Both the position numbers and the translations under genes were made by a program. A stretch of DNA of 23,396 nt from Paramicrosporidium saccamoebae KSL3 (lineage: Eukaryota > Fungi > Cryptomycota): NCBI GenBank assembly GCA_002794465.1, contig MTSL01000149.1:62244-85639 (forward strand). Reading direction: 5' to 3'. Below the pieces are notes generated by a model. The model was not told the origin of the DNA and did not search any database. It saw only the letters and a list, made by a program, of their open reading frames with translations. Positions 1,553 through 22,110 of this stretch are shown here, in pieces; the first letter of the stretch is position 1; each line of letters begins with the position of its first letter.

Positions 1553-1681
1553 ACTTTACATTTGTCGAAATTGTTTAGTACTGTGGGCATTAGTAGAGTA
1601 ATGGGCGCGAGGAATTTATCAAGAGTCTCTACTGCTATTGATCAGAGATGACGATCCTTTGCTACGAGAGAGTAAATAGGA

Positions 1682-1869
1682 GCCATTACTGCACGCCTCA
1701 CAGGTATAAAGGGTCTTTACCACTATAATACAAGCTTCACAGATATAAAGGCGCCCTATTACTGTGCTACAAGCCTCGGATATAAAGGGTCTCTGTTACT
1801 ATGTTACAGGCCTCGTAGATACAAAGGGTCGCTATTACTATACTACATGCCTTATAGATCTACGGGTAT
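1682..1869. repeat. Degenerate ~39-nt tandem repeat, 5 clear units, possibly extending to ~1621 and to 1908
   Basis: Units 1682-1715, 1716-1754, 1755-1791, 1792-1830 and 1831-1869 share TTACT..TACA.GCCTC..AGATA(T/C)AAAGGGTC. Confidence 0.85.
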
Positions 1870-1888
1870 ACCATTGTTAGAAATGGTC

Positions 1889-3235
1889 TTACCCAATGGA
1901 AAAGGCTCGCCGTAGTTTGACTGAATTTTTTGGCTCAACCCGGAAACTCTTCTTTACAAGCTCCTTTTCGTCCAAGATCACGGCACTCTCGATTAACATT
2001 ACGGCACCCTTGCTGCTCATCTGGCCAATATTGAATCTTTTGGAGATTTCCAGCAAGGTTTTCACTTTTTGAGCATATCCTTTCCACCCATCAAAATGCT
2101 CTCCAGATGGCGGACTCGTAGGGATGGCCTCATACAGATGCACCAAATCTGTCAAATGTAGGCCTAAAAATGGGATACATGGTCCTTCTGCTTCCAGCTC
2201 TCTCAGTCGTGCCCAGTTTCGATCCTCAGCAACAATTTCTTCCAGTATCTTGAATTCAGTCCGCTCAGTTCTGCTTAGATGACGCCATGTCCGTCTCAAC
2301 CGCCCTACCATGGAATAGCCCATCGCAACGATTACACACTTTAATCCATTATAATCCCGCATATCCAGGAGATGGGTGGCCAGGCGGATGCAGAACTGAA
2401 GAATTGCAGCGCGTTGCTTGGGACGTTCTGGTTGGAGGATAGAGTGTATGAGATACCAACTGAGGCGATCACTCCAATGAATTAGTCGGAGCAGAGATGG
2501 TGCAGTACGGTGACGGGAGGGACGAGTCCATGCCAGATTTGAAAATTCCAACGCAGAGATCATGCTGAAAAGATGTTGATGATGGGCAGTTATTTGCAGG
2601 GCGACATGATGAGGTTCGTAATCGAGAAGAGTACCGGACAATTTCAGATCGCCCATGGACGAGAAGAGCTTTCTCATGGAGGACATTACACCCCGCTTGC
2701 GGTGAATCTCGGCAGCAGATCTGGGAGGCAATGCCGTGTTTGGCGCTAAACTTTTATCAGAGAGAGCTTCAAGACCAATTTGGGGGAGCAGACGTTGCCA
2801 ATACATTTTCCGCCCCTCGTCTTCAAAGTCGGAGGGGATAATCCTCTGCCAGTGTCTCAAGAATTGGAATGCGCGTTTTGATTGCTGTGTGTCATAGTTT
2901 GGATGTGCTGCGGTATGGTTGGAGTGTTCTATGGTATAGTTTAATTGCTCTGTGATACTGCACTCGGCATTCTTGTCCAAGATTTTACTTGCAACTTGAT
3001 GAAAAATGTTGTTCCATGTAAAATTTTGCCGATAGAGTAGTGCAACAGAGTAGTACAAGTGCTCACTATCCTCCCTCGAATAGTCAAGCAGTGAATCTAT
3101 CAACTCTACGCACGACATCTCGGCAAGCTGCTCCTCACTCTGATCTGTCAGTGTCAGATCCTCCAACGAGCAGCTCAGCGCTACTGAACGGACTCTTTCG
3201 CTACTACCACCTGTAAGCTCTTCATGCATACTCAT
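1889..3235 (-). CDS. RasGEF (CDC25-like) guanine nucleotide exchange factor
   Basis: VALQIT..LF, SDRLSWYLIHSIL, RAAILQFCIRLA..L..MRDYNGL, VGRLRRTWRHL, RNWARLR and PCIPFLGLHLTDL match the CDC25 catalytic domain. First ATG is 3235 (alternative 3229); the ORF-track start 3247 is TTG. Confidence 0.88.
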   Translation of the reverse strand: MSMHEELTGGSSERVRSVALSCSLEDLTLTDQSEEQLAEMSCVELIDSLLDYSREDSEHLYYSVALLYRQNFTWNNIFHQVASKILDKNAECSITEQLNYTIEHSNHTAAHPNYDTQQSKRAFQFLRHWQRIIPSDFEDEGRKMYWQRLLPQIGLEALSDKSLAPNTALPPRSAAEIHRKRGVMSSMRKLFSSMGDLKLSGTLLDYEPHHVALQITAHHQHLFSMISALEFSNLAWTRPSRHRTAPSLLRLIHWSDRLSWYLIHSILQPERPKQRAAILQFCIRLATHLLDMRDYNGLKCVIVAMGYSMVGRLRRTWRHLSRTERTEFKILEEIVAEDRNWARLRELEAEGPCIPFLGLHLTDLVHLYEAIPTSPPSGEHFDGWKGYAQKVKTLLEISKRFNIGQMSSKGAVMLIESAVILDEKELVKKSFRVEPKNSVKLRRAFSIG

Positions 3236-3304
3236 GGGGGACAACAAATCTTGAGCTTCTCATAAAAATCGTCACTGTGGCAACCGGGCATCTGATTGGT
3301 CGCC
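3236..3304. promoter_or_regulatory. 69-nt bidirectional promoter gap (RasGEF / ZZZ3) with a CCAAT box and an X-box-like motif
   Basis: Lies between divergent ATGs at 3235 and 3305; GATTGGT at 3294-3300 and GTCACTGTGGCAAC at 3271-3284. Function is inferred. Confidence 0.5.
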
Positions 3305-4573
3305 ATGGACGACGACATTTTCGCCGGCAACCCCGAGTAATCCACTTGCCCTTTTGTTGATTTTTAGATATGCCATGGTGACAAAATCGCTGGCAGCTCT
3401 CGAGGGACAGTTGGAGCAAGCACATAGAGATATATCTGCACTACAGGAACTGAAAGGACGGGCACTGGAGGCGCCGGAGCAGTTCCTTGGCGTAATAGAG
3501 GATCGTGCAGAGTGCGAGCGGATGTTCCCAAAGATGCAAACGGTAGCAGCAGTGCCTACCATACCACTGGAGACGTACAGAGTAAGGCTGGTGCGGAGGG
3601 GCGCTGGGAAATACGGACAGAATCTAGGTAGGCAGTCCTACCGTGGCTTATGTATTTAGAATATTTGCTGAAGCGACTAGATGAGCTTCAAAAGAGTAGA
3701 CCCACTGAGAGAGGCAAGACTGATTCACCCTTACTATCGCCCTGTGTGCCTATCAGCCGCATGCCTCCCTCTCACACCCCCGAGGCACCGCTTCGTGATA
3801 CCATTCGGCGTCGTTTCTACGAGATTGTAGGTGCACCTCTGCGCACCGCTTCAGCACCAGCACTCTTTTCCACTATTGATCCTACGCCTAGCATGAATGA
3901 TGCTGTTCCAAATCGGGAAGATTTATTCTCGCCGCAACCGCGCAAGGCACAGTCGATCCACTTTACCATGCCGTTCCTCCCCAGCGATCCCAACTCACGT
4001 CCCTCCACACCGGCCATGGTAACGCCAGAACAGCCCAAGAAACGAAAGAGGATGACCTCTGCTGGCGCTGATTCGCCCCATCATAACCTGCCATGGACAG
4101 AGGGGGAGAAACAAAGACTGATTGAGCTATTAGAGGTGTATCCCGATGAGGAAGTGAACACCCGTCGCTATGCCAAGATTTCTGCAGCTATTGGTACGCG
4201 CACACCTGGCCAAGTCGCCAATCGTGTGAACAAGCTACAACTCAAATTGAAACGTCGAAATGAGGAGAAGATTGACCCGGGTGAGGATCTTGATGAGGTT
4301 CTGGATGTTGAGCTGCGAAAAAGCAAAGAGTACCAGGAGTACATGACCATCCGGAAACAGATTGAGGCGCTCGAGTCTGATTCCGGGATTTCGGTGCACG
4401 TTGGTTTCAAGTGCGACGACTGTGGGATGGAGCCCATTGTGGGCACGAGATGGAGATGTACAAAATGCCACGAACCGAATGCAATCGATCTGTGTCAGGA
4501 CTGCTATGAGTGTGGAGAATTCAATACTGTCCAGCACCGTCCTAGCCACCGATTCTTCCGTCACAATAGTTAA
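3305..4573 (+). CDS. ZZZ3: ZZZ3-like protein (N-terminal coiled coil, SANT/Myb domain, ZZ zinc finger); exons 3305-3336, 3368-3627, 3660-4573
   Basis: NPEYAMVTKSLAALEGQLEQAHRDI, NLPWTEGEKQRLIELLEVYPDEEVNTRRYAKISAAIGTRTPGQVANRV and HVGFKCDDCGMEPIVGTRWRC..C...IDLCQDC match ZZZ3 in order. Introns 3337-3367 (31 nt) and 3628-3659 (32 nt) restore the frame. Confidence 0.82.
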
Positions 4574-5014
4574 ATCATCAATAAGACTGTTTTTTATACG
4601 TATAAAGGTTGAGTAGAATCTCTGATCTACAGATATATACCTCTCGCAATACGCCATTTAAATGAACGATGGATAATCCCAAAAAATTGGCGCATCTGTG
4701 AATAGAGGATTACATACTGCTCAGCACCATCACAATAGTTAAATCATCAATAAGACTGTTGTTTATACGTGTAAAGTTTGAGCAAAATCTCTGATCTATA
4801 GATATATATCTCTCGCAATATGTTAGTTTAAATGAGCCATGGATAATCTCGAAAAATTAACGCAGCTGTGAATGGAGGATTACATACTGCTCAGTACCAT
4901 CACAAGGGCTAAATCATCAATAAGACTATTCTACACATGCTATTTTATGGTATCAGTCGTTATTTTAGATGGGCCATGGATAAGCCCCAAACTTCCAAAT
5001 TGACACATTTGAAT
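4561..5014. repeat. ~170-nt tandem duplication: two full units plus a shortened third, overlapping the ZZZ3 and OXR1 3' ends
   Basis: Units start at 4561, 4730 and 4900. Units 1 and 2 have identical first 31 nt and ~20 differences over 170 nt by hand count. Confidence 0.92.
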
Positions 5015-5922
5015 CGCTCCGTGCTGGCGAGACATTCATTTTCAAACGTAGACACGGGCTGACTGAGCCCTTCCAACAGCTCAGTGTCCAGCCAAAATCC
5101 AAATTTGCCTTCTCCACAGCCTGCTGCCATATATGTCGTCTCGCTGATCATGAAATAGTCATTGCGTCCTGTTGAGCCCCACTTTTTAATACGACCCTCC
5201 TCCATCCGCCAGAGGAAGCACTCGCCGGTCCCATAATGGCCGAAATGTGGCTTCCAAGGCTCGGTGGAGAAGACTCCAAATAGTGCGTCGCCATCATCTC
5301 GGACCACGACCAGCGTAGGACCGTAGTGGTGACGACATTGTGAGAAGAGTGTGGAGAGGGAGAAGCCATACTCGGGAGTACTGTAGATTAAATTCCAATT
5401 GCTCACCAGACGGAACCGAGGCGGAAGGGCGGCATGAATCTATTATGGTGAGCGAAATGACAAATGCCTACTCGATTAATCATGTCCTGGGTAAGGAGGG
5501 CATCGTCCCCAGTGGCATGACGGTCAAGAAGCTTAATTCCATAATCAGTCGTATCTAGGTACGAGACATTGGATCTTTTAGTCTCCGCTATCCGTGTTTC
5601 CTGCTTTGCCGGTTGCTGCGCCACTGTAGGTTCTATTGTGTTAATCAAAATTGTTCAACGTACCATTGGGAGCGGCACTATTCGATGGTGCCCAGAAACT
5701 CCACACGTAATTGCCGACAGCCGTCGCGCCAGTAACTAGTGAATTGACCACCGTCACCGCGATGCCAGACGTTGAACTTTCGGCAGAATGACGACGACTG
5801 GTGGAGGGAGATTCAGGGGGGGTGACGGTGCCCATTGCGGGGACGGAACCTGCCTGCGGTCTATCGTTGTTGGGCCCTTTCATTGTCACCTCGTCTTCGT
5901 AATGACCTTTCACGGGGCTCAT
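4960..5922 (-). CDS. OXR1: Oxidation resistance protein 1 (TLDc domain); exons 5922-5664, 5632-5472, 5439-4960
   Basis: LLTQDMINRIHAALPPRFRLVSNWNLIYS...GFSLSTL, GPTLVVVRD...FGVF, YGTGECFLW, GKFGFWLD..L..G.S....TFEN..L and LEVWG are TLDc motifs. Introns 5633-5663 (31 nt) and 5440-5471 (32 nt) join three ORF-track fragments. Confidence 0.9.
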
Positions 5923-5985
5923 CCCCCCTTATGATTGGCCGATTAGACTCGACAAATTATCCCAAAGGTATATTTTGTGTATTTA

Positions 5986-6417
5986 TTACCGCTGCACACT
6001 ATTAGCCGCTCTGGTTGCATGTGCGCTCCTCGTTTGATGGCCTATAGTGGGTCGTGCTACCTTGGGGGCCGTCTTCTCGTCATGCTCGACAAAACCACTG
6101 AGGCCCATGTCATATTCGCGTTCCAGATACAACTGTATATCCTTTGGCTCAATGGTATGTGAGTGCCGGTGACGTGCCAATGCGGCGGAGGACTGTGCTA
6201 CTTCAATAATGAACGACTCGGCCATCTTTGCCAACGCCTATGCATTGGTGAGAAGCAACAGTAAAAGTACCAACTCGACGCAGGGCTCAAAGCGTTCTCC
6301 AGGCGCGACATTGGCGACTAGCTCGTGTAGTTTTGCCCTTAGAATTATGGGCTGTTGGGGAGTCTCGGCGCCTTGTCCCATATCCACGGTGGCGGCTAGT
6401 CTATGAAGTCCACTCAT
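5986..6417 (-). CDS. TAF12: TFIID/SAGA subunit TAF12 (histone fold); exons 6417-6271, 6237-5986
   Basis: KLHELVANVAPGERFEPCVELALAKMAESFIIEVAQSSAALARHRHSHTIEPKDIQLYLEREYDMGLSGF matches TAF12. Intron 6238-6270 (33 nt, phase 0). Confidence 0.88.
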
Positions 6418-6734
6418 AAACCAAATTCAATAATCTTAAAGTCAACAGCAAGTAGTACCCGATTTGGGACTAGTCCGGAAAAGTTCCACGACCCATATGT
6501 CGATGTGTGGTAAGCTAATTCGCGCTTAAAGAATGATATTCTCTATCTAGAGCATGATCAGATGAAAGTAGTGAAATGACGGACAATATTCAATAAAAAC
6601 TCTTGGTTAGGCATGTGCGATGGTAGTTCCTATACGCAGGTAGAAGAATCCCTACGCCACAAATGCGATTCTTATCCTGCTTTTGGCTTGGCTGATTTGA
6701 CAATTTTGGAAAATAAATTGTATAATATTCTTTG

Positions 6735-7429
6735 ATGAGCGGAGCATCTTATGCAGTATTGGACGAGCCAACGCCAGCCGTAGAGAAAGGAGCAGCCAGC
6801 GACCCGCTCTATCATGCCCTCCTTGGCGGAAATATTGGAAGCGCTTTGGGTACTGCAAAGGAGGACATGACGCGCAACACGCTTGATGAGCCCGTCTCAG
6901 AGACCTTGGTAAACATGCAAATTTGTCGAATGATGGATAGAATAGAGATTTGAAAAAGGTGAGTGACAGGGCATGGATGATCATGTCGCTAGACGAACCA
7001 GAGATATCGCTGCGTGAGTGGGATCTTTGGGGCCCGCTGCTGAACTCTCTCCTGTTGGCCATGTGTCTTGGTCTGGGTTCCAGTGTCACTGTCCCCGCTT
7101 TCACATTGACTATCACGCTTATATGGGCGGGGGCCGCGTTGGTGATTATGAATGCACGACTTTTAGGCTATCGGGTAGCCTTCCTGCCGGGTGTCTCATT
7201 CCTGGGATACTGTGTGACCCCGCTGACAGGATCTGTGGTATTGCTGAGTATGGCACCTTTCTGGGGACTAAGGGTTTTACTGGCGGCAGTAGGTGCGGGC
7301 TGGGCAATCACGGCGGGAATGCGACTGATGGCGTTGGATCCGGCGCTAGAGGATCGTCGATTACTGGCCGCAGCTCCCTTGTGTCTGTATTATATCCTGC
7401 TGGCCTGGTTGATAGTGATTGTGCTGTGA
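6735..7429 (+). CDS. YIPF6: Yip1-family Golgi membrane protein (YIPF6/Yip4-like); exons 6735-6908, 6941-7429
   Basis: NTLDEPVSETLNRDL and LREWDLWGPL, then LLGYRVAFLPGVSFLGYCVTPL and about five hydrophobic segments. Intron 6909-6940 (32 nt). The subfamily assignment is less certain than the family. Confidence 0.8.
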
Positions 7430-7500
7430 ATAATAATCTTTTGATTGTGCTGTAAATAGTAGTCTTTTGATTGTGCTGTAAATAATAGTCTTTTGATTGG
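7417..7500. repeat. 26-nt tandem repeat x3 plus a partial unit, starting inside the last Yip1-family codons
   Basis: GATTGTGCTGTGAATAATAATCTTTT / GATTGTGCTGTAAATAGTAGTCTTTT / GATTGTGCTGTAAATAATAGTCTTTT; unit 1 contains the TGA stop (7427-7429). Confidence 0.95.
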
Positions 7501-7529
7501 GTTATGGACAATAATTTGCTAATGTTGGT

Positions 7530-7578
7530 CGTGTTATACATAGTAATCTGTTAGGTGTTTAATACATAGACACCTTTA
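7530..7578. repeat. Imperfect ~25-nt duplication ending in the MAU2-like stop codon
   Basis: CGTGTTATACATAGTAATCTGTTA versus GGTGTTTAATACATAGACACCTTTA; the final TTA (7576-7578) is the minus-strand TAA. Confidence 0.6.
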
Positions 7579-8931
7579 TTCTGCCAGCAGAGCGTATTTT
7601 TGTGCTTCGTCTGTATCTCCGAGAAGTCTCTTTGCCTTGGATAACAACCCAGCGGCAGCTTTTTCCAGCACCTCCCATCGGGCTGTTTGAGCGCAACCAA
7701 ATGCAGCGGCACTCATCTTTGCCGACATTGCGAAATCTGTATCAAGATAAAGTCGTCCCACCAACAATAGCACGATAATCTTCAACTGGGCGTTTTGTGT
7801 ACAAGAGTTGAGCATCTTCAAAGACGTTAATAGAGTGCCCTTGGTGTGATGAACCGGATGGTTGAGACGATGCATACAGAGGGCACAAATTACAAGTCGG
7901 AACGACTCGAGCTGTGGGTCGAGTGAACCTTGCAAATCCTGGACGGCCACTAGCGCATTTCCAGGATCAGTCTGTATCGATTCCATTAGGCCAAGAAGTT
8001 GTTTCCGTTTCTCTGCATAGGCATTCTTTGTGTCGATTACTTCAGATCCAGCATTCATACTCTCAAATCGATGTTGCAATTCAGGGAGAAGAAGCGTAAT
8101 AATGTTTGTCGGAGCCTCCCCAAGTCTCAGACTAAGAGTTGCAGCCAATCTCGCCCAGACGGTCCCTATCAAGGTAGGATCGTGCAGTCTAATAAAGCCA
8201 GGCAGTATACCATTACACGATGGGATCATTCCAGTATTTCTTTCATAAAACCGTCTCGCATGATCTGATTCTCCCCTTTGGATTCTTTCCTTCAGACACA
8301 TCAGAGTAGCGATCAAACTGACAGCCTCTGATGATGGTTCCATCGCCAGCAGGGCAGGTTCCAGTTCGGATAAAACAAGACTCTCGTCAAAGTAGGAAAG
8401 TAGGATGAGTATATATAATCGATGGGATGCATATTCAGGACCGACGAGCAGCTGGAGTGATTCACGGAGAACGTTAGGATATCCATGCCGCCATGCGAGC
8501 CAGTCGAAATGCATCCACCATTCGAGTTGTCCCTCGTTCTGTGCCACTGTTCTGGATTCTAACAAATATTTCATCCTTCGCTTGTCAGATGCCGCTAGCT
8601 CGTTTTGACACCACATGGATACAGCGAGGAACCTCAGATGAAGCGGACAATCGACTCTCTACAATCTTAGTTGCTCCGTTACATGTACGTTCTGGAGCAA
8701 ATGTAAACACTTTCGTATGTGCTCACATGCCTCTACCTCGTTGGAGGTGTGTGACTGTAGCAGATGTGACAGATACAATCTAAATCGCACTTCTAGCGCT
8801 GTTGGTAGCACAAAGTCCAACCCTGCATACAGACACCTCATCGCTCTCTCCAAACTGCCCTTATCACTCATGCTCCCACATCGACATGCCTCCCGCCAAA
8901 GCATCTCCATCGTGGACAACAACGACACCAT
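7576..8931 (-). CDS. MAU2: MAU2/Scc4-like cohesin loader subunit (helical repeat protein); exons 8931-8689, 8658-7576
   Basis: AMRCLYAGLDFVLPTALEVRFRLYLSHLLQSHTSNEVEACEHIRKC resembles the MAU2/Scc4 N-terminus. Intron 8659-8688 (30 nt) joins it to ORF 7576..8616. The start could also be 8910 or 8904. Confidence 0.65.
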
Positions 8932-8959
8932 AATTGTTTTCTTTTCCCATCCGACAGAC

Positions 8960-9361
8960 ATGCAAGAACTGCATGCACACAAAGCCACTGATACAACATG
9001 TCGAGATTTTGTCTACTTTAGACAGCTGCTGGCTCGGTCTAGGGGTTATTGGGATGACAATATTGCACACCGGCTAAATGGAATTGACATTGGCGATGTG
9101 CGACAGTGTAGAAAACTGGTGGATGGCGTGGAGCGGGCACATAAGGACCGTAGAAATAAGATTGAGTTTTGCATGCACACTCTGCAGAAGGATGTGGAAA
9201 GACAGCCTACAGCTGTCCTGCGTAAGGAGGTAGCCAACTCGGTCCACTTCATTAATATATAGATTGTCCTGCTGGAATCTGAATTAATCGTGGAGGATAT
9301 AATCTGTGGCCGGACAATGGCAACAATTTTCTCTAAATGTAGGAGTCTGCACCACTCATAA
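8960..9361 (+). CDS. MIX23: Mitochondrial intermembrane space protein Mix23/CCDC58; exons 8960-9229, 9263-9361
   Basis: CRDFVYFRQLLARSRGYWDDNIAHRLN, C..L......AH..R...I.FC and LLESELIVEDII..RT...F..KC match Mix23/CCDC58. Intron 9230-9262 (33 nt). Confidence 0.82.
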
Positions 9362-9389
9362 ATGATTCTCCGGTTTTGATTGGCCAGAA

Positions 9390-10415
9390 ATGACCGTTGA
9401 CTCTGGGTTCCCAGCCCATCTCTTCCCAGCCAGCTTCACTCTGCTGTACTGTCCGTTTGAAGAATGCACTCAGGAGATACCGTTTACTGATCCATCTGCT
9501 CTCCTGACCCACGTGGAAGAGCTGCACAAACTCAAAGTCCAGGATCCTGCAGGCGTGATACCTTTCCTGGACCGGTATCTGGCTGCCCTCGTCAGCAACC
9601 CAACCGAAGAGGATACTGCACGCCGGGAACGTCTCCAAAGCCATCGTCTACAGGAGATACTTGCCTTGCAGGCTGTGGAGCGTAATACGCAGCACCAGAA
9701 GGGACGCCACTGCCTCTTTTGCTCGGTGCATCTCCCGACGAGTCAGCTGTTTGACCACATGTTCCAGGAACACGGCTTCAATATCGGCCAACTGGATAAT
9801 CTGGTCATGGTAGGCGAGTTTCTCGACACGCTCCAAGCAAAACTGGACAAGAATACGTGCATTTATTGCGAAAAGGACTTTCCCAATGGAACAGTGCTGC
9901 GCAAGCACGTTAAGAACAAGAACCATTATAGGATCCATCCTCAGAACCACGTCTATGACAAATATTATGTGGTAAACTATTTACAAGTTGGACGTTTGTA
10001 TGACGAAGACGCTGCACGCGGTGAAAGAGAGGAACCGAAGAGTGAAACAGGTGAGGAGGAATGGGCTGAACTGGTGGATCCGGTGGATGAGCGCACAACC
10101 TGTCTGCTCTGTCCACACACGACATCTGATGCGGAAGAATGTATTGCCCATCTCTCCTCGGCCCATTCCTTCCCGTGGGACGTGATCCGTGCTCTTGACA
10201 CATATGAGGCCATCAAAGTGATCAATTATATCCGGGTGCGTGTTGCCGAGCTCGCTTGCATCTATTGTGAGATGGAATTTGGAGTTGAAGAAGAGATGGC
10301 ACAGCACCTACAGACTCATTCACATTGCGTCCCTGAACGGAAATTGTGGGATAATCCGCGTTTTCTGTTTCCCATCTACGAGGATGATCCCCTGCTCTGT
10401 CACCTCGACGAATGA
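9390..10415 (+). CDS. ZNF277: ZNF277-like C2H2 zinc finger protein
   Basis: HMFQEHGFNIGQLDNLV...EFL..LQ.KL....CIYCEK.F...LRKH...KNH..I.PQN..YDKYYVVNYL and the C-terminal FPIYEDDPLLC match ZNF277. Confidence 0.85.
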   Translation: MTVDSGFPAHLFPASFTLLYCPFEECTQEIPFTDPSALLTHVEELHKLKVQDPAGVIPFLDRYLAALVSNPTEEDTARRERLQSHRLQEILALQAVERNTQHQKGRHCLFCSVHLPTSQLFDHMFQEHGFNIGQLDNLVMVGEFLDTLQAKLDKNTCIYCEKDFPNGTVLRKHVKNKNHYRIHPQNHVYDKYYVVNYLQVGRLYDEDAARGEREEPKSETGEEEWAELVDPVDERTTCLLCPHTTSDAEECIAHLSSAHSFPWDVIRALDTYEAIKVINYIRVRVAELACIYCEMEFGVEEEMAQHLQTHSHCVPERKLWDNPRFLFPIYEDDPLLCHLDE

Positions 10416-10569
10416 GCATATATGAGAGTAGATGGGAGTAAATTAGTAGACGAGTAATCCGGATAATTCAGATAACGGACAACTCGGGTGACACGGGTAA
10501 TTTAGGTAAAGTTATGTACATTACGCATTGATGAATACGTGCATTCAATTAAAAAGTCATGTACAGGCT

Positions 10570-10692
10570 TACTTGTAGCACGATAACTAGAGAGACCTGT
10601 TTGAATGTTATAACTCGTGAATAATACAATTATGCATACCTATTTACACATGACTCATGGGCATTACAACTACGCCGGCCTATTTACAATGT
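10570..10692. repeat. Degenerate ~40-nt tandem repeat (2 clear units plus 1 decayed) ending in the CBS-gene stop codon
   Basis: 10609-10648 versus 10649-10688 match at 28/40 positions without gaps, and both end CCTATTTACA. A more decayed copy ends ACCTGTTTGAATG near 10607. Confidence 0.7.
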
Positions 10693-11499
10693 GTGCCTCT
10701 TTAAAAAAGAGATTATATGGTGTAGGTGGAGGATGCCCACGGGTCGGGCGTAGGAATCGAGACGCCACACGTGATGAGCTTGATGTTGCAGAATCTTTTT
10801 TAGCACATCGCCACAGGTGAGGGACTCACTACAAGTCAACAGGCTAGGAGGGGTGCCATCCTCCAAATACACAGTGATTGGTAGGGCCAGTTCGTCCTGG
10901 ACAGAGTGGAAATCAGCCAACGTCACATTTCCCACCAACAAACCCCGTCGATCAACCAGCCCAACCACACCGGAAGACGTTGGGGCCAGAAGTGTCTGGA
11001 GACATTCGGATGCCCTGCAGTTGTGGGGCAGCAATGGCGGGTCTGACTGCCAATCTAGCTTTGTGGCGGACAGATCCATCACACAGTCCAAATGGTAGCC
11101 ATAAATATACAAATAATGCAAGACATCGGCTGCTGTGATCACCCCCGCCACTAGATCATCCATTAGGATTATCGGATCCAGCCAATCATCGTCCCACAAT
11201 TCCAGCAGTCTTGAAATGGAATCTTCCAACCCGCAGGTCTTGGAGGTCTTCATCTCCACAAGGGAACAGACGGCGTCTATGGAGTTGTGGAAATACCATC
11301 GCAGCACATCTTCCAGACGGAGCCACGAGATGCGATCCTGCTGCTGCACCAGCAAATTACGAATGCCATATCGATTGTAAGCCTCCATGCAGGCACCCAC
11401 CCGCACATCCTCAGTCACACTAAACACCACTTCCGCGTCTCTCCTTGCTCGCCATACATCTTCTGCTCGATGTTCTTCCAGCCATCTCCGCAGCTGCAT
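10684..11499 (-). CDS. Tandem CBS-domain protein (Sds23 / AMPK-gamma-like fold)
   Basis: CBS-like segments AGVITAADVLHYL, VGLVDRRGLLVGNVTLADF and HHVWRLDSYARPVGILHLHHII. The likely ATG is 11499 (MQLRRWL); the upstream ORF-track extension overlaps CenH3. Confidence 0.75.
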   Translation of the reverse strand: MQLRRWLEEHRAEDVWRARRDAEVVFSVTEDVRVGACMEAYNRYGIRNLLVQQQDRISWLRLEDVLRWYFHNSIDAVCSLVEMKTSKTCGLEDSISRLLELWDDDWLDPIILMDDLVAGVITAADVLHYLYIYGYHLDCVMDLSATKLDWQSDPPLLPHNCRASECLQTLLAPTSSGVVGLVDRRGLLVGNVTLADFHSVQDELALPITVYLEDGTPPSLLTCSESLTCGDVLKKILQHQAHHVWRLDSYARPVGILHLHHIISFLKRHTL

Positions 11500-11535
11500 G
11501 ATTGGCTGCCGTTTGGCGGGAAGGTCCCCGGTCCG
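11500..11535. promoter_or_regulatory. 36-nt bidirectional gap with a CCAAT box and an E2F-like site
   Basis: GATTGGC at 11500-11506 and TTTGGCGGGAA at 11512-11522 (reverse complement TTCCCGCCAAA), between the ATGs at 11499 and 11536. Confidence 0.5.
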
Positions 11536-12044
11536 ATGCCTCCTCGGCCGATGAGCAGTAAAACGCTCCCAGCCCGCGACGTTGGACGCACTCCCCGGGC
11601 AACGCCGTCCAAGACCACACCTGCGCGCAAACAACGTACCGATCCATTGATTTCTGACTGTAGCGCGATCGAGCTCGCCAAGGGCGCGACGGTACCGTCC
11701 CGGAACGGTGGCATTGCGAGAAATCCGCTATTACCAAAAGACTTCGGATTTGCTGCTGCGGAAGCTGCCGTTTGCGCGGCTGGTCCGGGAAGTAGCCACG
11801 GATTTTATCAGCACCCAATGGTCTGATGGAGTGGGTCTCCGTTGGCAAAGCCACGCCATTCTCGCACTTCAGGAGGCTGCCGAGGCGTTCCTTGTGCATT
11901 TGTTTGAGGACGCGTATATACCCCGTCCCCTGCTTATTATGTAGTAATCTGTGTGCGATTCATGCGAAACGTGTAACTATAATGCAGAGGGATATTCAGC
12001 TGGCCCGTCGCATCCGAGGCTCGCAGGGCGGGGTCACTTTATAG
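11536..12044 (+). CDS. CENPA: Centromeric histone H3 variant (CenH3/CENP-A/Cse4/Cnp1); exons 11536-11635, 11664-11913, 11945-12044
   Basis: Divergent short N-tail, then [18 protein letters not shown], an extended loop 1 ([16 protein letters not shown]), [13 protein letters not shown] and [15 protein letters not shown], all CenH3-type rather than canonical H3. Introns 11636-11663 (28 nt) and 11914-11944 (31 nt). Alternative ATG at 11551. Confidence 0.93.
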
Positions 12045-12099
12045 GGCCGGGTTACTTTATAGTAGCGTCATAGTAACGTCACGGTAGTGTCCGGTGGTG
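12027..12099. repeat. 18-nt duplication containing the CenH3 stop, followed by ~11-nt tandem repeats
   Basis: GGCGGGGTCACTTTATAG (12027-12044, ends in the stop) / GGCCGGGTTACTTTATAG (12045-12062), then TAGTAGCGTCA / TAGTAACGTCA / CGGTAGTGTC. Confidence 0.85.
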
Positions 12100-12132
12100 C
12101 GTGTGTTGATATTGACTAAACATATTTTGATT

Positions 12133-12624
12133 TTACTCAAATGTCGTGTCAGTGGTGTATCGGCGGGGAATGTTTCCATTGGGAAAGTATTTCCCTACCG
12201 TCGGCAATTCTCTGGGCGCCTATTCAGTCAGCAAACAATGCATGCGACATACAAACTGTCCTTTAATCGGGCTTTCATACCGGCTCAGCCAATGATGCAC
12301 CAGGAACATTCCTCCAAAGAATCCACCCAATCCTCCCAGCACCCAGCTCACCCCATAAGTGGTTTCGTGATCAAAGCTCCACATGGTTAGCGGCTCGTAA
12401 TCCTCCGGCATTGCCTCGCCAAAGTTCCGTCGGTTCTGTTGGTCAAAGTAGGTGGCATATGGGTCGCGGAGTTGCTGGCTTTCAGCGGGGACGTTTGGAT
12501 AGTCGCCGATCATGCGCGGGTCGTCCTCTGCTTGCGGCCAGCGGTACCAGTCCGGGTGCATGATCCGCGGCATTGGTACCATCGGTGGTCTCAGTCCACT
12601 GAATCGACGAACAATCCTCAGCAT
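12133..12624 (-). CDS. NDUFB8: NADH:ubiquinone oxidoreductase (complex I) subunit NDUFB8/ASHI; exons 12624-12253, 12219-12133
   Basis: Presequence-like start, GDYPNVPAESQQLRDPY..YFDQQNRRNFGE, one TM segment, and APRELP after intron 12220-12252 (33 nt). Confidence 0.85.
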
Positions 12625-13031: not shown

Positions 13032-13110
13032 GTATTAATAGAAATTGTGACTTTATCCCTCGTCCCTACACACGGTGTACTATATAGGTCGTGACGTACT
13101 CACTCATTCT

Positions 13111-15576
13111 CTATTTTGCTATCCATGGGATAGAGTGTCGTGTACACCACAATTTTACAAGCTGCGTATCAACCTGAGTAAACTCATAGATCGCCTTGGA
13201 TGTACGTACCATCAGTGTCTTTGGATGCCAGCCGCCACCAGATCCAACACTCTTTGGCAACATTGCTAGCTTTCTATCTGACACGCCCTGGAAGAGGATG
13301 CAGATTGGCGTCAGAAACAATCTTCCCGGTATCGGCAGCGTCCTCTTCAAATAACACGACAGAATGCATACGGAATCGTCGGGAACGAACAAAGAAAATA
13401 ATAAAACAACTTCCTTATGGGGCGATGGGAAGCTCATTACATCAGTAAATGAGACAGTCAGCAACTCGTAGTCAAAAGTCAAAAAGACCTCTGCTCGTCT
13501 GCAGAGTCTTCGCGTCAATAATTCTGCAGTATTGGCGTATCCAATGGGAAGTGGCACTACCAGCTGTTGCAGCTGATCGGATTCGTAGCGGAGCACCAGA
13601 AACGACCAGCACCCGATTCGCCAACAGCAGGCATTACGCGAAGATTCCAGTGGAAACGAATGGATTGGTTTCTGCCGGGTACATGACAAGCGGAGTAGCA
13701 GGGCAGCATCATCATGTAACAAGTGCATTTCCACTGTCCTGCCGTAGGCAAAGCGCAGGTCCATGGAAGAGTAGCCGTTATTATTATTGTCGATTCTCGT
13801 CGAAATTGACTCTAATGTCCCCGTCCCGGCAATAAAAAGGGGACAATCTTCAGTTGTGAAAATCATGACAATGCAGTCATTAATAGTTAGCATCGCCGGT
13901 TCTTGATTCCAAATGACTTGTAACCTCAAGTTTTCCCAGGAACCAGACTTTTTCACTCGCGCATATTCAAAGGAAAACACTCGAGAATCTGAACGTACAG
14001 ACAGTGTCCCAAAATCATCAGCAAATGAAATGTTCACGTCTTCAATGTCCTCGCTACTCTTAGGAATCATATCAAAGGACTTTTCAAAGTCTTCATCTCT
14101 CATTGGCAAGTCTACCATTGACCGACTAATTCGAGTCTCTCCCAGCGTGTGGGGCGTCAGCAGGTCCTCGGCGCTGTGCTGTTCTGCTAGCACCAAATCT
14201 ACAGATTGTGCAGCGGGGATTGGGGATTGATTAGCTTTGGTAAAGTTATACCAGGCAATTTTTAAATTATTCCAATTCACTCCTCCTTCTAGCAACGGCT
14301 GTTCTGTTAGCTTGAGGTTAGCCGAAAACTTCCAATCGGTCGCTGTGAGGGGATCGGTGCAAATGAACACTTCCCAGCTGATGGAAAATCCATCCTTTGA
14401 TGTTTCCAGCGGATATAGTACGTTTTGGGGTATTTTCTTTACAGGCAGAGTCATCTGAAACAAAACAGTCCTCTTGGAGTATCTCCTCCTCCTCTGCAAA
14501 AGCGAGACGTAGATATCAGCGACTTCAATGTCGGTAAGAGCAAACTGTTGAGAGAACATCAATGGAATAGTCTCTTCAGGCTGAAACTCTTCGCCTCTCT
14601 CTCGCACCGTGCCCATCCCAACGACACATGACATTGTCGCCAGTGTTCCAACCCTCTCCAAAACGGCCTTTTCCAACTTTACCGAAATGATTCGAACACG
14701 CACAAATCTGCGGGTAGACTTCCAGAGAGGGATGAAGAGCAAGTCTTTTGTGGTTGCCGCCTCAGGTCGGAAGATGAGTGGCTGGTAGTTTGGGAAAACG
14801 GCTCTATTGCGCACCAGACTGGAGATTACCAGAATCAAGACGTTGGAGAGTCGCTCTAATGTTTGCTCTTCATACTCTAGTGAGAATGTAATGGTGGGCA
14901 GCTCTGAGATCATACACAGGATCCTTGAGGATGGAAAGTCAGTTAATCGAAGTAGCACTTGGCCATCAAAACGATTTACGCGCAGCTTGGTCGCCATCCG
15001 TCCGAGTCGAAGTCCAGCCATTGCCGCCAGAAAAAAGGACGCATCTCCCTCGTACTCCACGTCTAGTCTCAAATCCAGTCCATCCTTTCCATAGTTGGTG
15101 CTAACCGCCTTGACATAGGGGGCCTTTTTCCCCAAAACAAAGTCGCGTAAGGCCAAATCTGCCTAGACTCATCAGACCACGTGATTTAATACAAGGAGTT
15201 TTCTGCTCTCGGTGAGGAAATCAACCAACTTGTCCTCGATGCGACCAATGATGAGTTCTTGGATCAACTGGGCCATTTGGGATTCGGCAGAATTAAAAAT
15301 CACCATGTCTAGGACCGTATTTAGCCATTCGCAAGTCTCTTCCAAAGCGTCCTCGAAATGTGGGGGAAGAATCTAAACGTTTAAATACCTTGGTTTGAAT
15401 ACTTTTGCATTGCGGGCTGGAAGCGTAAAAGGGCTACTTGTTCTCCGTGATAGACTCCAGTCGAGATATCCTTGTGCAAGCAGGATAAATAATAGAGAGA
15501 ATAGACAAGCAATGGCAGAAAGAGCGGCTAGGAATCCATATACAAAACTTGAAAGGCACGACACGAGTATTATCAT
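13111..15576 (-). CDS. Membrane-anchored SMP-domain lipid-transfer protein with a C2-like region and a C-terminal GRAM/PH-like domain (~800 aa); exons 15576-15403, 15372-15193, 15162-13111
   Basis: N-terminal hydrophobic anchor (SFVYGFLAALSAIACLFSLLFILL), SMP start ETCEWLNTVL, LRDFVLGKKAPYV and LDVEYEGD, a C2-like FVRVRIISVKL region, and C-terminal LSCYLKRTLPIPGRLFLTPICILF (GRAM-like). Introns 15373-15402 and 15163-15192 (30 nt each). Additional in-frame introns cannot be excluded. Confidence 0.72.
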
Positions 15577-15710
15577 GGACGCACTGTCAAAGTTCACATT
15601 AATTTACGATTATTTTGTGAATTGGGAACTTGTAGTAAAGAATAGATGGAGTATCCCAAAATGCCTTTTGAATCTTACATTTATTAAAGCGTTTTTCAAG
15701 CATGAACCTT

Positions 15711-15791
15711 TTTACTGAATTTTATATCCATTCAGGAGCTTTCCAACAATGTGTCTTTCTACTGAGTCTTGCCTCCATTCGGGGCGTTTCC
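15711..15791. repeat. Imperfect 47-nt-period duplication in the 3' flank of the secreted protein gene
   Basis: 15711-15744 versus 15758-15791 match at 24/34 positions without gaps (shared ACTGA and TCCATTC.GG...TTTCC). Confidence 0.55.
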
Positions 15792-15879
15792 TGTGTATCC
15801 AGATTTGCATTCAAGTGTTTATTCAAATTAATTACATTGTTGTGCCACTTCCCCACCCACCCATATAGATCAGCTCGTA

Positions 15880-17289
15880 TCAGTAACGCATGCGATGATA
15901 GTCCATGGACATTGTGTGAGAAGCTTGGTATGCCGGAGTATGGCCGCCATGGGCACTGGTAGTCGGCGTCAAAGTTTCTGACGTATCCGTCTCAAATTCA
16001 ATGCTGCCCCCAGTAGTAGTGATTGGTACCTTCTTTATCACCGAACTGGTAATCTCTTCAGTGATCACAGTGGTTACGGTAATAGTCTCCTCAGTAGTCG
16101 GCCAAGAGGGCGCGTATTGAGTGATTTCAGTGACTGTCATAGTCGTTGCATCGCTACATTCTGGACAGGGAGAACAGGACAGTGATTCAGTATTGTCCTT
16201 TTCAGGTGGCATGGTAAGGGTCTCAGTCACGGTCGTCCAAACTGTCAATCCATTGAGCTCAGTTGATGTACTCACACTGGTTACCACAGTCAACGGTGTC
16301 TCGAAAACGGTGGAAATCTCTGTAACAGTAACTTCGGACGTGACTGGAGCAGTGGTGATTGGCGATTCAGGACTAGTCACAGTCTCCACAACTGTAGTAA
16401 CGATAGTGCTAACCGTTGAATCAGTAGTTCCAATCGTCACAGTTGTTACCGTAGGGACTTCATTTGTCACAGTGCTAGTGACTACTACCACTGAAGTACT
16501 TATATCAGGTGTCGTTTCTTCGGGTGTAGTTTCGTCAGTTGGCGTCCAGTCAGTTGTAGTTTCGTCAGTTGGAGTCCAGTCGGTTGTGGTTTCGTCAGTT
16601 GGAGTCCAGTCGGTTGTAGTTTCATCGGTTGGAGTCCAGTCAGGTGTAGTCTCGTCGGTTGGAGTAAACTCGGTCGTTATTTCAGTCGTCATCTCGCTTG
16701 TGGTGCTTAAACATGTGTTGGGTTGCTCCGGAATGGGTCTGCGGGGTGGCTTGATAATGATGATATCGACACATCCAACAAAGATCTCTCCACTGTCAGT
16801 CTCCATTCTCCACTGTACGAAACATTCGCCAAATTCACAGGCCGGAGTGTCGACTGGTAACATAATATCCACATCGATCCTGCCCGGTCTCATCCCGCAT
16901 GCACCCCGCCACAGTGCAGAATCACCTCTCATTCCAGGACACATCAGTGTTACTTGGCACTGTGACATACTTGAGGTTGCAATCATCCACCCGACTGCCA
17001 TTTGGTCACCAGCCTGGATTACTCTTGCTGTTTCACGGTCATGCGGGATTCCACCACATGGCATCTCGCAGAAGCCCGGTGGGCGTGAGTCCTTCCCTAC
17101 CAGAACGCTGAGCTGTTGCATGGATTTTCGCATGATCTGGTCACCCCCCATATCACGCACGGGCTTGGGACACTGGTTTAGAAAGTCGGGTTGAATACGA
17201 CGTGGTTCGGGGTTGCAAAAGTAGCCATTGGCGGAGGTGCGGCCGAAAAGGAGCGAGGCAAGCAGGAGACTTCCGCAGACAAGCTTCAT
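15880..17289 (-). CDS. Secreted protein: signal peptide, Cys-rich LPMO-fold-like domain lacking the His brace, and a long Thr-rich mucin-like region
   Basis: Signal peptide MKLVCGSLLLASLLFGRTSA, then NGYF..PEPR, PCGG, AGDQMAVGW, CQVTL, LP...C...C.VQW and EIFVGCVDI, followed by ~270 aa rich in Thr/Ser/Val/Glu. The gene is well supported; the fold assignment is inference. Confidence 0.7.
   Translation of the reverse strand: MKLVCGSLLLASLLFGRTSANGYFCNPEPRRIQPDFLNQCPKPVRDMGGDQIMRKSMQQLSVLVGKDSRPPGFCEMPCGGIPHDRETARVIQAGDQMAVGWMIATSSMSQCQVTLMCPGMRGDSALWRGACGMRPGRIDVDIMLPVDTPACEFGECFVQWRMETDSGEIFVGCVDIIIIKPPRRPIPEQPNTCLSTTSEMTTEITTEFTPTDETTPDWTPTDETTTDWTPTDETTTDWTPTDETTTDWTPTDETTPEETTPDISTSVVVVTSTVTNEVPTVTTVTIGTTDSTVSTIVTTVVETVTSPESPITTAPVTSEVTVTEISTVFETPLTVVTSVSTSTELNGLTVWTTVTETLTMPPEKDNTESLSCSPCPECSDATTMTVTEITQYAPSWPTTEETITVTTVITEEITSSVIKKVPITTTGGSIEFETDTSETLTPTTSAHGGHTPAYQASHTMSMDYHRMRY
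16521..16670 (-). repeat. Coding 30-nt (10-aa) repeat x5, consensus TPTDETTTDW
   Basis: The 30-nt period is visible in the DNA and in the translation TPTDETTPDW (TPTDETTTDW)3 TPTDETTPEE. Confidence 0.95.
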
Positions 17290-17520
17290 TTGTACAGTCC
17301 CCTACCCGACTCGTCCCAATTTATAGCGCATTGGTGAGTGCCCGCCCACTCTAAGGTTACTATTCTGGTACTGCAGGTCTATCCCCAAATAGGAAAGATT
17401 CCATATTAAGAATATTGCATGTTGTGGTCCAAAATAGTAGTAAGATGATTAGCTGGATATTTGCAAAATTGATACTTTGCTTATGCTTTACCATCTTTCC
17501 CACTATGCGAAGATACTCTC

Positions 17521-17580
17521 ACCACCCACCACCACTCATAACCACTCATCACTACCCACCACCACCCATCATTAACCAAT
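17521..17580. repeat. 10-nt C/A-rich tandem repeat x5-6
   Basis: ACCACCCACC / ACCACTCATA / ACCACTCATC / ACTACCCACC / ACCACCCATC / ATTAACCAAT. Confidence 0.85.
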
Positions 17581-17648: not shown

Positions 17649-18169
17649 TTATGGATTGTTTTCGTCAAAAGCTTGTTTATATGCTTGCTGGATCTGCGAT
17701 ACAAAGGATTGCAAGTTCTGTTCAATGGTTGCTACAGTCATTATAAAGATTGTTAGAGAGTACCCGCTTGCAAGCTGACTCTTCGTACCTCTGATAATTG
17801 CTTTTCAAAGTCGCGCAAACTGTCCATTTGTACCTGATACATAGTCTTGGAAAAGTCTGCAACCATTGCATCCAGCGCATCATAAATCCCATCCACAATT
17901 TCTTTAAACTCTTGACACAACTCGGATTGCAGTTTTTGACACTTGTCACGGAACTGCTGCTCACTAAAACCGATGCGTGACTTGACTATCGACATTTCAT
18001 GCAGAATATGTTTTGATCCTCCGACGTTGCTATTGGATTCCCACTGGTCTCGCTTCTCAACTGGCGCCAGTGCCATATCCAACTCATTTGTATCAATAAT
18101 CTCGTCAATAAACGGCGCAAACTGCGAGTCGTAAGTATTCTCCCGAGAATCCTGATACGCACCAGTCAT
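17649..18169 (-). CDS. Hypothetical coiled-coil protein; exons 18169-17764, 17731-17649
   Basis: ORF with a heptad-like helical C-terminal half. The 32-nt intron 17732-17763 (GTACTC..CTAAC..TAG) continues it as AATIEQNLQSFVSQIQQAYKQAFDENNP*. No family recognised; the start is uncertain. Confidence 0.6.
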
Positions 18170-22025: not shown

Positions 22026-22110
22026 CCAGGAGTAGTGCAGATACATTTTATTTAGACATTTCAAAACCATCACGAGGGTGAGGAGCAAGAGTTCTGCCTG
22101 TACAGTGCGC

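Follow-up and report, generated by a model that had tools for sequence, protein, structure and literature searches.

Young, lineage-specific tandem duplications in the convergent gene spacers of a compact Paramicrosporidium saccamoebae locus

The stretch of DNA analyzed here (the window: 23,396 nucleotides of contig MTSL01000149.1 from Paramicrosporidium saccamoebae KSL3) carries approximately 19 genes in 23.4 kb, with a G+C content of about 49% and very short introns, such as the 31-nt intron at 11904-11934 of a histone H3-like gene, which was read directly from the sequence. The gene density of the genome is about 1 gene per 1.1 kb. Seven pairs of genes within the window converge tail to tail, and this report concerns the tandem arrays that lie in the spacers between them. 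With the flanking open reading frames (ORFs) extended to their stop codons, the seven convergent gaps measure 336, 386, 146, 268, 88, 79, and 85 nt, exactly the sizes given in an earlier reading of this DNA (the original prediction), in which the arrays were attributed to a process acting at gene 3' ends. The gene labels of that reading were mostly backed by Pfam. The genes flanking the first four gaps are as follows.

173-1552, + strand: Ada3 (Pfam)
1889-3247, - strand: RasGEF (Pfam)
3369-4573, + strand: ZZZ3, with Myb and ZZ domains (Pfam)
4960-5406, - strand: OXR1, with a TLDc domain (Pfam)
ending at 7429, + strand: Yip1 (weak Pfam match)
7576-8616, - strand: MAU2 (no Pfam match of its own; label taken from Cohesin_load in relatives)
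9390-10415, + strand: ZNF, zf-C2H2_2 (Pfam)
10684-11634, - strand: CBS (Pfam)

The H3-like gene, which faces NDUFB8 across the fifth gap, has a long loop 1; its histone H3 fold was assigned via relatives, and it is plausibly CenH3, the name used below.

Arrays were located with Tandem Repeats Finder (TRF), and their significance was assessed against dinucleotide shuffles. The convergent gaps of the window contained the following.

1687-1859, Ada3/RasGEF gap: 39 nt x 4.5 (72% matches) or 76 nt x 1.9 (76%) by TRF; z 17.6
4516-5014, ZZZ3/OXR1 gap, which the array fills: TRF core at 4561-4927, 170 nt x 2.2, 88% matches; z 53
7416-7499, Yip1/MAU2 gap: 26 nt x 3.2, TRF 93% matches; z 34
7523-7569, MAU2 side of the same gap: weak pair of 21-nt copies 26 nt apart, 76% identity
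10610-10688, CBS side of the ZNF/CBS gap: duplication of 39-40 nt x 2, 72% identity, spacing 40; the second copy spans the CBS stop at 10684-10686
12025-12081, CenH3/NDUFB8 gap: 18 nt x 2.1 at 12025-12062, then 11 nt x 2.1 at 12059-12081; TRF 90-91%; z 8
13032-13110, L31/GRAM gap: 79 nt, repeat-free, no direct repeats; shuffle p 0.49
22026-22110, gap between a 525-aa ORF and cystathionine gamma-lyase: 85 nt, no direct repeats; p 0.91

Repeats had been claimed in five of the seven convergent gaps. Four of these junctions do carry clear arrays (39/76, 170, 26, and 18 plus 11 nt; z 8-53 against dinucleotide shuffles), but the fifth, the duplication of about 40 nt beside CBS, is marginal, with a p value of 0.004-0.04 against shuffles that depends on the frame. 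Repeats were also sought in the 79- and 85-nt gaps and none was found, in agreement with the earlier description, and the 79-nt L31/GRAM gap represents the baseline spacer size.

BLAST searches and gene-end alignments confirmed that the units are unrelated to each other and are copied from local gene-end DNA. The 26- and 18-nt units begin within Yip1 and CenH3 coding sequence, and copies of the coding ends of ZZZ3, OXR1, Yip1, and CenH3 lie inside units. Specifically, the 170-nt unit runs from the terminal ~35-55 nt of ZZZ3, TAA included, through the spacer to the OXR1 stop and the final ~52 nt of OXR1 coding sequence; a unit that carries both gene ends points to a tandem duplication with breakpoints inside ZZZ3 and OXR1. 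A 21-nt deletion is common to its copies, and the outer copies leave both ZZZ3 and OXR1 intact. The left limit of this array was placed by sequence reading at about 4516-4520, as ZZZ3 positions 4520-4539 match the unit ends at 16 of 20 positions. Yip1 contributes its final 4 codons and its TGA to the first 26-nt unit. At its far end the array breaks off in a 6-nt partial unit (TGATTG), and degenerate units run on to about 7551; in a register test, 24, 25, 26, and 16 of 26 positions matched, followed by 18 of 26 at 7526, where the 99th percentile of shuffles was 17. The 18-nt unit corresponds to the last 6 codons of CenH3, which recur just past its TAG at 12042-12044. Degenerate copies of the 39-nt unit were also seen at 1617-1638 and 1878-1895. 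Copies within arrays differ by 7-28%. Partial units close the arrays of the 26-mer (6 nt), the 18-mer (2 nt), and the 11-mer (1 nt), as would be expected of any non-integer array, and the arrays are old. When the arrays are subtracted, the gaps of the window fall to about 46-90 nt, near the repeat-free 79 and 85 nt, with the exception of Ada3/RasGEF (about 200 nt).

Protein searches, together with look-ups of contigs, yielded syntenic loci from at least seven related, uncultured organisms (L001/L002, L004, L005, L007, L008/L009, L010, and L011). The closest relatives are represented by three short contigs (L003, L006, and L012), which share 88-95% protein identity with the window and differ from it at 42-47% of fourfold degenerate sites. 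The genes from Ada3 through to the U3 snoRNP gene keep a conserved order. The arrays of the window are not present in any of these three contigs. The Yip1/MAU2 junction of L003 has its own array of 15 nt x 4.3, the ZZZ3/OXR1 junction of L006 carries a diverged duplication of ~72-80 nt x 2 adjoining the OXR1 stop, and L012 has 19 nt x 4.3 downstream of ZNF. That the junction in question bears its own, different array in each close relative indicates fast turnover. In the distant relatives, unrelated arrays and microsatellites occupy the same junctions: 36 nt x 6.2 plus (CT)15 at MAU2/Yip1 and (TG)17 at OXR1/ZZZ3 in L001, 12 nt x 5.6 at OXR1/ZZZ3 in L010, and 5-nt repeats at NDUFB8/CenH3 in L005. 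As far as these loci go, duplications recur independently across lineages. The divergence between units, 7-28% as against 42-47% at fourfold sites, shows that the arrays are young, and their absence from the close relatives makes them lineage specific. No relative emerged from two further metagenome scans, whose queries were nine concatenated gene ends and an OXR1 alignment, respectively, and an exact look-up of one protein of the window gave no match.

The distribution of arrays by gap type was then compiled over ten loci with approximate gene models. Of the 29 convergent gaps, 13 had a TRF array scoring at least 40, as did 2 of 24 head-to-tail gaps and none of 24 divergent gaps (Fisher p 2e-5), and arrays made up 28% of spacer bases in convergent gaps versus 0-2% in the other gap types. 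A shuffle-based test returned 13/27 convergent, 2/19 divergent, and 5/24 head-to-tail gaps (p 0.006); when its rows were restricted, by our own classification, to periods of at least 10 nt, the counts were 9/27 convergent versus 2/43 others (p 0.002). Divergent gaps yielded no array of period at least 10 among the 19-24 gaps considered and no minisatellite in 3.8 kb. Within the window itself, self-similarity was detected in 5/7 convergent, 0/6 divergent, and 2/4 tested head-to-tail gaps. Together, these data demonstrate that arrays are strongly enriched in convergent gaps, as the original prediction had anticipated. Calculated per 3' end, however, convergent (13/58) and head-to-tail (2/24) gaps do not differ significantly (p 0.21), and convergence itself, as opposed to a position merely downstream of a gene, is therefore not shown to matter. 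Gap length tracked array content (Spearman rho 0.75), with a median gap of 248 nt with an array versus 82 nt without one. These values uphold the proposal that arrays re-inflate spacers and support array births as largely explaining the inflation of individual spacers.

The units had also been described as anchored on stop codons. Four of the five arrays indeed contain one (the ZZZ3 TAA together with the copy of the OXR1 end, the Yip1 TGA, the CenH3 TAG, and the CBS TAA), but this is not above expectation. Under a geometric model in which a segment of length u touches an ancestral spacer of length g, the chance of including a stop is approximately 2u/(g+u), which amounts to 0.3-0.45 for the 18-, 26-, 39-, and 40-nt units and to 1 for the 170-nt unit; by our own calculation, ~2.6 of the five arrays would be expected to include a stop (P ~0.17). 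With ancestral spacers of ~50-90 nt and units of 18-170 nt, stops are thus often included by geometry alone. Two of the cases put forward for anchoring found no support by themselves. The copy at 1878-1895 that overlaps the RasGEF stop matches the 39-nt unit at 14 of 18 positions, which is not significant alone, and the ~25-nt repeat said to hold the MAU2 TAA corresponds to the pair at 7523-7569 (p 0.08 alone), which ends 7 nt before that stop codon (7576-7578). Most arrays in the relatives lie 9-79 nt from the nearest stop, and only two or three touch one (a 17-mer in L010, a weak 15-mer in L001, and the L006 duplication). Stop anchoring is a true description of the window, but it follows from geometry where spacers are very short and is not above chance; the further occurrence of head-to-tail and coding arrays argues in the same direction, against a process aimed at stops or terminators. 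Transcript-end-templated repair, which had been among the proposed mechanisms, fared no better, as no poly(A) tract was found at the unit boundaries of the ZZZ3/OXR1, Yip1, and CenH3 arrays, which were read directly; the lack of an A-run there argues against transcript-templated copying.

The arrays found outside convergent gaps include the following.

15669-15791, head-to-tail gap downstream of a Thr-rich secreted protein gene: 47-nt direct repeat; score 16 versus 8.6 +/- 0.9 in shuffles, z 6.5
17520-17568, second head-to-tail gap: 10 nt (CACCACCCAC) x 4.9 by TRF; z 10
1433-1527, + strand, Ada3 coding sequence: in-frame 30 nt x 3.2 in the C-terminal tail by TRF, with an ERERQSSTVS-like translation

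The Ada3 tail that holds the last of these is lineage specific, spans ~55 residues (1385-1549), and consists mostly of the 30-nt repeat, homology to relatives stopping at residue 404. At 16525-16665, an in-frame repeat of 30 nt x 4.7 (TPTDETTTDW) was observed in a 469-aa Thr/Ser-rich protein, which is probably a variable cell-surface protein and has a hydrophobic N terminus that resembles a signal peptide. Coding arrays with a TRF score of at least 50 have periods of 30, 30, and 21, each divisible by three, while the non-coding periods in the window are 39/76, 170, 26, 18, and 10. The 30-nt repeat of Ada3, its period divisible by three, shows the same duplication process at work in coding DNA. 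Within genes, arrays are as frequent in the middle or toward the 5' end as toward the 3' end.

Taken as observed, the anatomy of the arrays, their local origin, youth, and turnover, and their enrichment in convergent gaps describe a known kind of event, tandem duplications kept in the unconstrained 3' spacers of a compact genome, of which the present instances are new. We consider it probable, if by no means secure, that the arrays are minisatellite births, young tandem duplications produced in each lineage by ordinary mutation and filtered by selection, and that no stop-codon-directed system is involved. As to molecular mechanism, we infer that duplications would arise genome-wide through replication slippage or microhomology-mediated tandem duplication, and that purifying selection in a gene-dense genome would eliminate nearly all of them. 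The survivors would be those in tail-to-tail spacers, since these hold no promoter, and in-frame copies in tolerant coding tails. We likewise infer that such events are neutral: a duplication across a gene 3' end would be harmless because the outermost copy retains the full frame and stop, leaving the inner copy as a promoterless fragment. Once two copies had formed, the array could expand, diverge, and be lost, and individual spacers would inflate.

Several results are in line with this account. Plain microsatellites build up in the same spacers in the relatives, and the high-scoring coding arrays have periods divisible by three. Published work shows such duplications arising throughout the genome, and in haploid yeast the events that selection spares in essential genes are in-frame or 3'-terminal (PMC8639346; bioRxiv 10.64898/2026.02.28.708716). 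The partial closing units of 6 and 2 nt are consistent with the microhomology-duplication model (PMC8639346; bioRxiv 10.64898/2026.02.28.708716), although any non-integer array has them. The convergent spacers of the window can hardly be aligned with those of its close relatives (z 2.3-3.8), whereas a 31-nt spacer upstream of ZNF is 84% identical and ungapped (z 11) and is more conserved than fourfold sites. The whole MIX23-to-ZNF "gap" was considered as a contrast of promoter and terminator constraint and was rejected, as it is mostly MIX23 exon, so that only its last 31 nt were usable.

Other points weigh against neutral survival as the full account. The asymmetry is very strong, with 0 minisatellites in 3.8 kb of divergent spacer, and the intolerance of promoters is an assumption based on the one conserved 31-nt spacer. 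In budding yeast, moreover, tandem repeats are reported to abound in promoters (Vinces et al. 2009, as cited in PMC4393290). Neutral divergence between the window and the close relatives is ~0.6-0.75 substitutions per site by our own correction of the fourfold differences, and the presence of a separate array at nearly every close-relative junction within that divergence suggests a high input rate. High duplication input is not predicted by a pure tolerance model. The complete lack of minisatellites in divergent spacers and a fresh array in almost every lineage make a stronger pattern than we would have expected from tolerance by itself. The counts themselves are to be read with approximate gene-start annotation, orthologous junctions that are not fully independent samples, and coverage of 23 kb of this genome.

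A possible, though doubtful, alternative is that gene 3' ends are mutational hot spots, at which collisions of convergent transcription, R-loops, or replication pausing and termination would raise breakage and slippage, so that duplications would arise more often in tail-to-tail spacers and not merely survive better there. The strong convergent-gap enrichment, the 3.8 kb of divergent spacer free of minisatellites, and the independent arrays at the same junction in almost every lineage studied would all follow from such a hot spot. Yet convergent spacers were directly shown to be poorly constrained, which already predicts enrichment, and neither the per-3'-end comparison (p 0.21) nor the mid-gene and 5' positions of coding arrays single out convergent ends. 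Nor were structures that might stall forks in evidence: inverted repeats, hairpins, and palindromes were absent from 6/7 gaps, and the ZNF/CBS gap has only short palindromes of 10-12 nt. The broader proposal that tail-to-tail junctions are true duplication hot spots, driven by convergent transcription or replication termination, that act as a homeostatic source of spacer offsetting compaction and regenerate terminators, appears unlikely to us.

Equally unlikely, in our estimation, is a selected function, in which units would be retained because each supplies a poly(A) or termination element, so making termination between convergent genes fail-safe, or to maintain a minimum spacer. The AT-rich words TAGTA, ATAGTA, TATAA, TAAATA, and AATAAA are enriched in the 80 nt after stops and rare upstream of genes, and by our own reading they are present in most array units; the poly(A) efficiency elements of yeast 3' untranslated regions (UTRs) coincide with TA-rich repeats, notably between convergent genes (PMC4393290). 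The k-mer enrichment is partly circular, however, because it counts the arrays themselves, and no array is conserved even at 88-95% protein identity. The 79- and 85-nt gaps of the window and many gaps in the relatives are repeat-free. Selection for a minimum spacer is improbable given that a gap of 30 nt, and even gene overlaps of 4 and 74 nt, are tolerated in relatives. The overlaps involve the 3' ends of convergent ZNF and CBS in L007 (3375-3448, 74 nt) and L005 (3960-3963, 4 nt), and they indicate that the clade tolerates zero spacer.

Searches for a shared terminator motif gave little. CTTTATA was considered as a candidate, with 8 matches versus 2 expected, all in 3' regions, and was set aside, since 5/8 matches fall inside two arrays and leave ~5 independent occurrences, which is not convincing. 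TTTATAR was not enriched, and the Reb1-type roadblock site TTACCCG had 1 match versus 1.6 expected.

It is very improbable that the arrays are an assembly artefact, a dispersed mobile element, or a non-coding RNA gene array: tandem repeats are a known source of assembly errors and a 36-nt array in L001 was mis-called as a gene, but copies that differ by 7-28% argue against an artefact, as the original prediction had reasoned, and comparable arrays occur in independent assemblies of other samples. An all-against-all BLAST of the junctions showed no unit recurring at another junction; its matches were confined to orthologous flanks and to simple repeats in common. Long or terminal inverted repeats were not seen, and neither Rfam (E <= 0.1) nor a tRNA search gave a match in the gaps. 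The lack of shared units, inverted repeats, Rfam and tRNA matches, and A-tracts indicates that the arrays are not mobile elements, RNA genes, or retro-copies. One candidate for a shared element, a resemblance of the 39-nt unit to a junction of L006 (ATAAAGGGGTCTTTAC...), was not significant by BLAST. The mis-called gene lies at 11385-11687 of L001, where the gene caller made a 100-aa ORF, without a Pfam match, from the 36-nt x 6.2 array at MAU2/Yip1.

Several features of the locus were recorded alongside the arrays. RasGEF (1889-3247) lies between Ada3 and ZZZ3 solely in the window. In the four of four distant relatives L001, L008, L010, and L011, Ada3 and ZZZ3 are direct head-to-tail neighbors 71-268 nt apart (15876-16005, 7721-7962, 11830-11902, and 2792-3061, respectively), which indicates that RasGEF was inserted or relocated in this lineage or was lost in the others. 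The 39-nt array occupies the junction created by its arrival. In L010, an array of 38 nt x 3.9 (or 76 nt x 1.9; 83-93% matches) was found at 14299-14446, with an unannotated minus-strand ORF on either side. Immediately past the NDUFB8 stop, a 32-nt block (12101-12132) is 87.5% identical to the equivalent position in L004 (216-247), although the MAU2 protein of that relative shares only 48% identity. Conservation of this kind in a convergent spacer is unusual; the block could be a 3' UTR element or an unrecognized exon end.

Two gene models also merit comment. MAU2 exon 1 (- strand, 8689-9012) and the beginning of MIX23 (+ strand, ~8966) seem to abut or overlap head to head (8689-9238), an arrangement that leaves practically zero divergent promoter spacer. 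For a 144-aa ORF, homology to L001 runs beyond the apparent stop at 17753 into 17664-17732 (region 17664-17755); this "stop" probably lies inside a short intron, with the true gene end ~90 nt further on. The introns of ~31 nt gave the genome a Blastocystis-like look and prompted a search for a Blastocystis-type signal, and the TGTTTGTT motif was seen 28 times versus 23 expected, which is no enrichment. With respect to affiliation, among named homologues the one closest to the TLDc protein comes from a Mucoromycota fungus (39% identity), closer relatives all being metagenome or read-archive assemblies, and the relatives carry the RRG7 family PF10356, a fungal family. The two observations suggest a fungus-like lineage.

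The locus shows where new DNA survives at a density of about 1 gene per kilobase, namely in tail-to-tail spacers, which absorb duplications. Spacer sizes range from -74 to 594 nt across the relatives, and most of this variation reflects the birth of arrays. On the practical side, arrays create false ORF calls, such as the 100-aa call in L001, and make 3' UTR lengths unreliable, and they could serve as strain markers. If the bias were in truth mutational, transcription/replication conflicts at convergent genes would be linked to minisatellite birth.

Three known systems invite comparison. The unstable tandem repeats that Vinces et al. 2009 (as cited in PMC4393290) described in promoters of yeast resemble the present arrays in being strain-variable intergenic repeats of a compact genome, but their location is the opposite, as divergent gaps here are without arrays of period at least 10 (0 of 19-24). 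The TA-rich 3' UTR repeats of yeast (Menconi et al. 2015, PMC4393290) are closer in setting: the genome is compact and of fungal type, repeats are concentrated in 3' UTRs, notably between convergent genes, and their organization varies between species while the location is kept. Those repeats, however, are (TA)n-like microsatellites tied to poly(A) efficiency elements, whereas the units here are complex, span 11-170 nt, and include coding ends and stops, and the corresponding evidence is a k-mer enrichment after stops. The third system is that of minisatellites formed by microhomology and slippage (Haber-Louis model; Dan et al. 2021; Wei et al. 2026; PMC8639346; bioRxiv 10.64898/2026.02.28.708716). 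It differs in that the microhomology arms here are putative, deduced from old, diverged arrays, and neither Dan et al. 2021 nor Wei et al. 2026 reports a tail-to-tail bias or stop-codon duplication. The likeness extends to head-to-tail copies of local single-copy DNA, whose short closing partial units any non-integer array would show, to expansion from 2 copies with fast gain and loss between relatives, and to the retention within genes of in-frame or 3'-terminal events, with no frame bias outside them.

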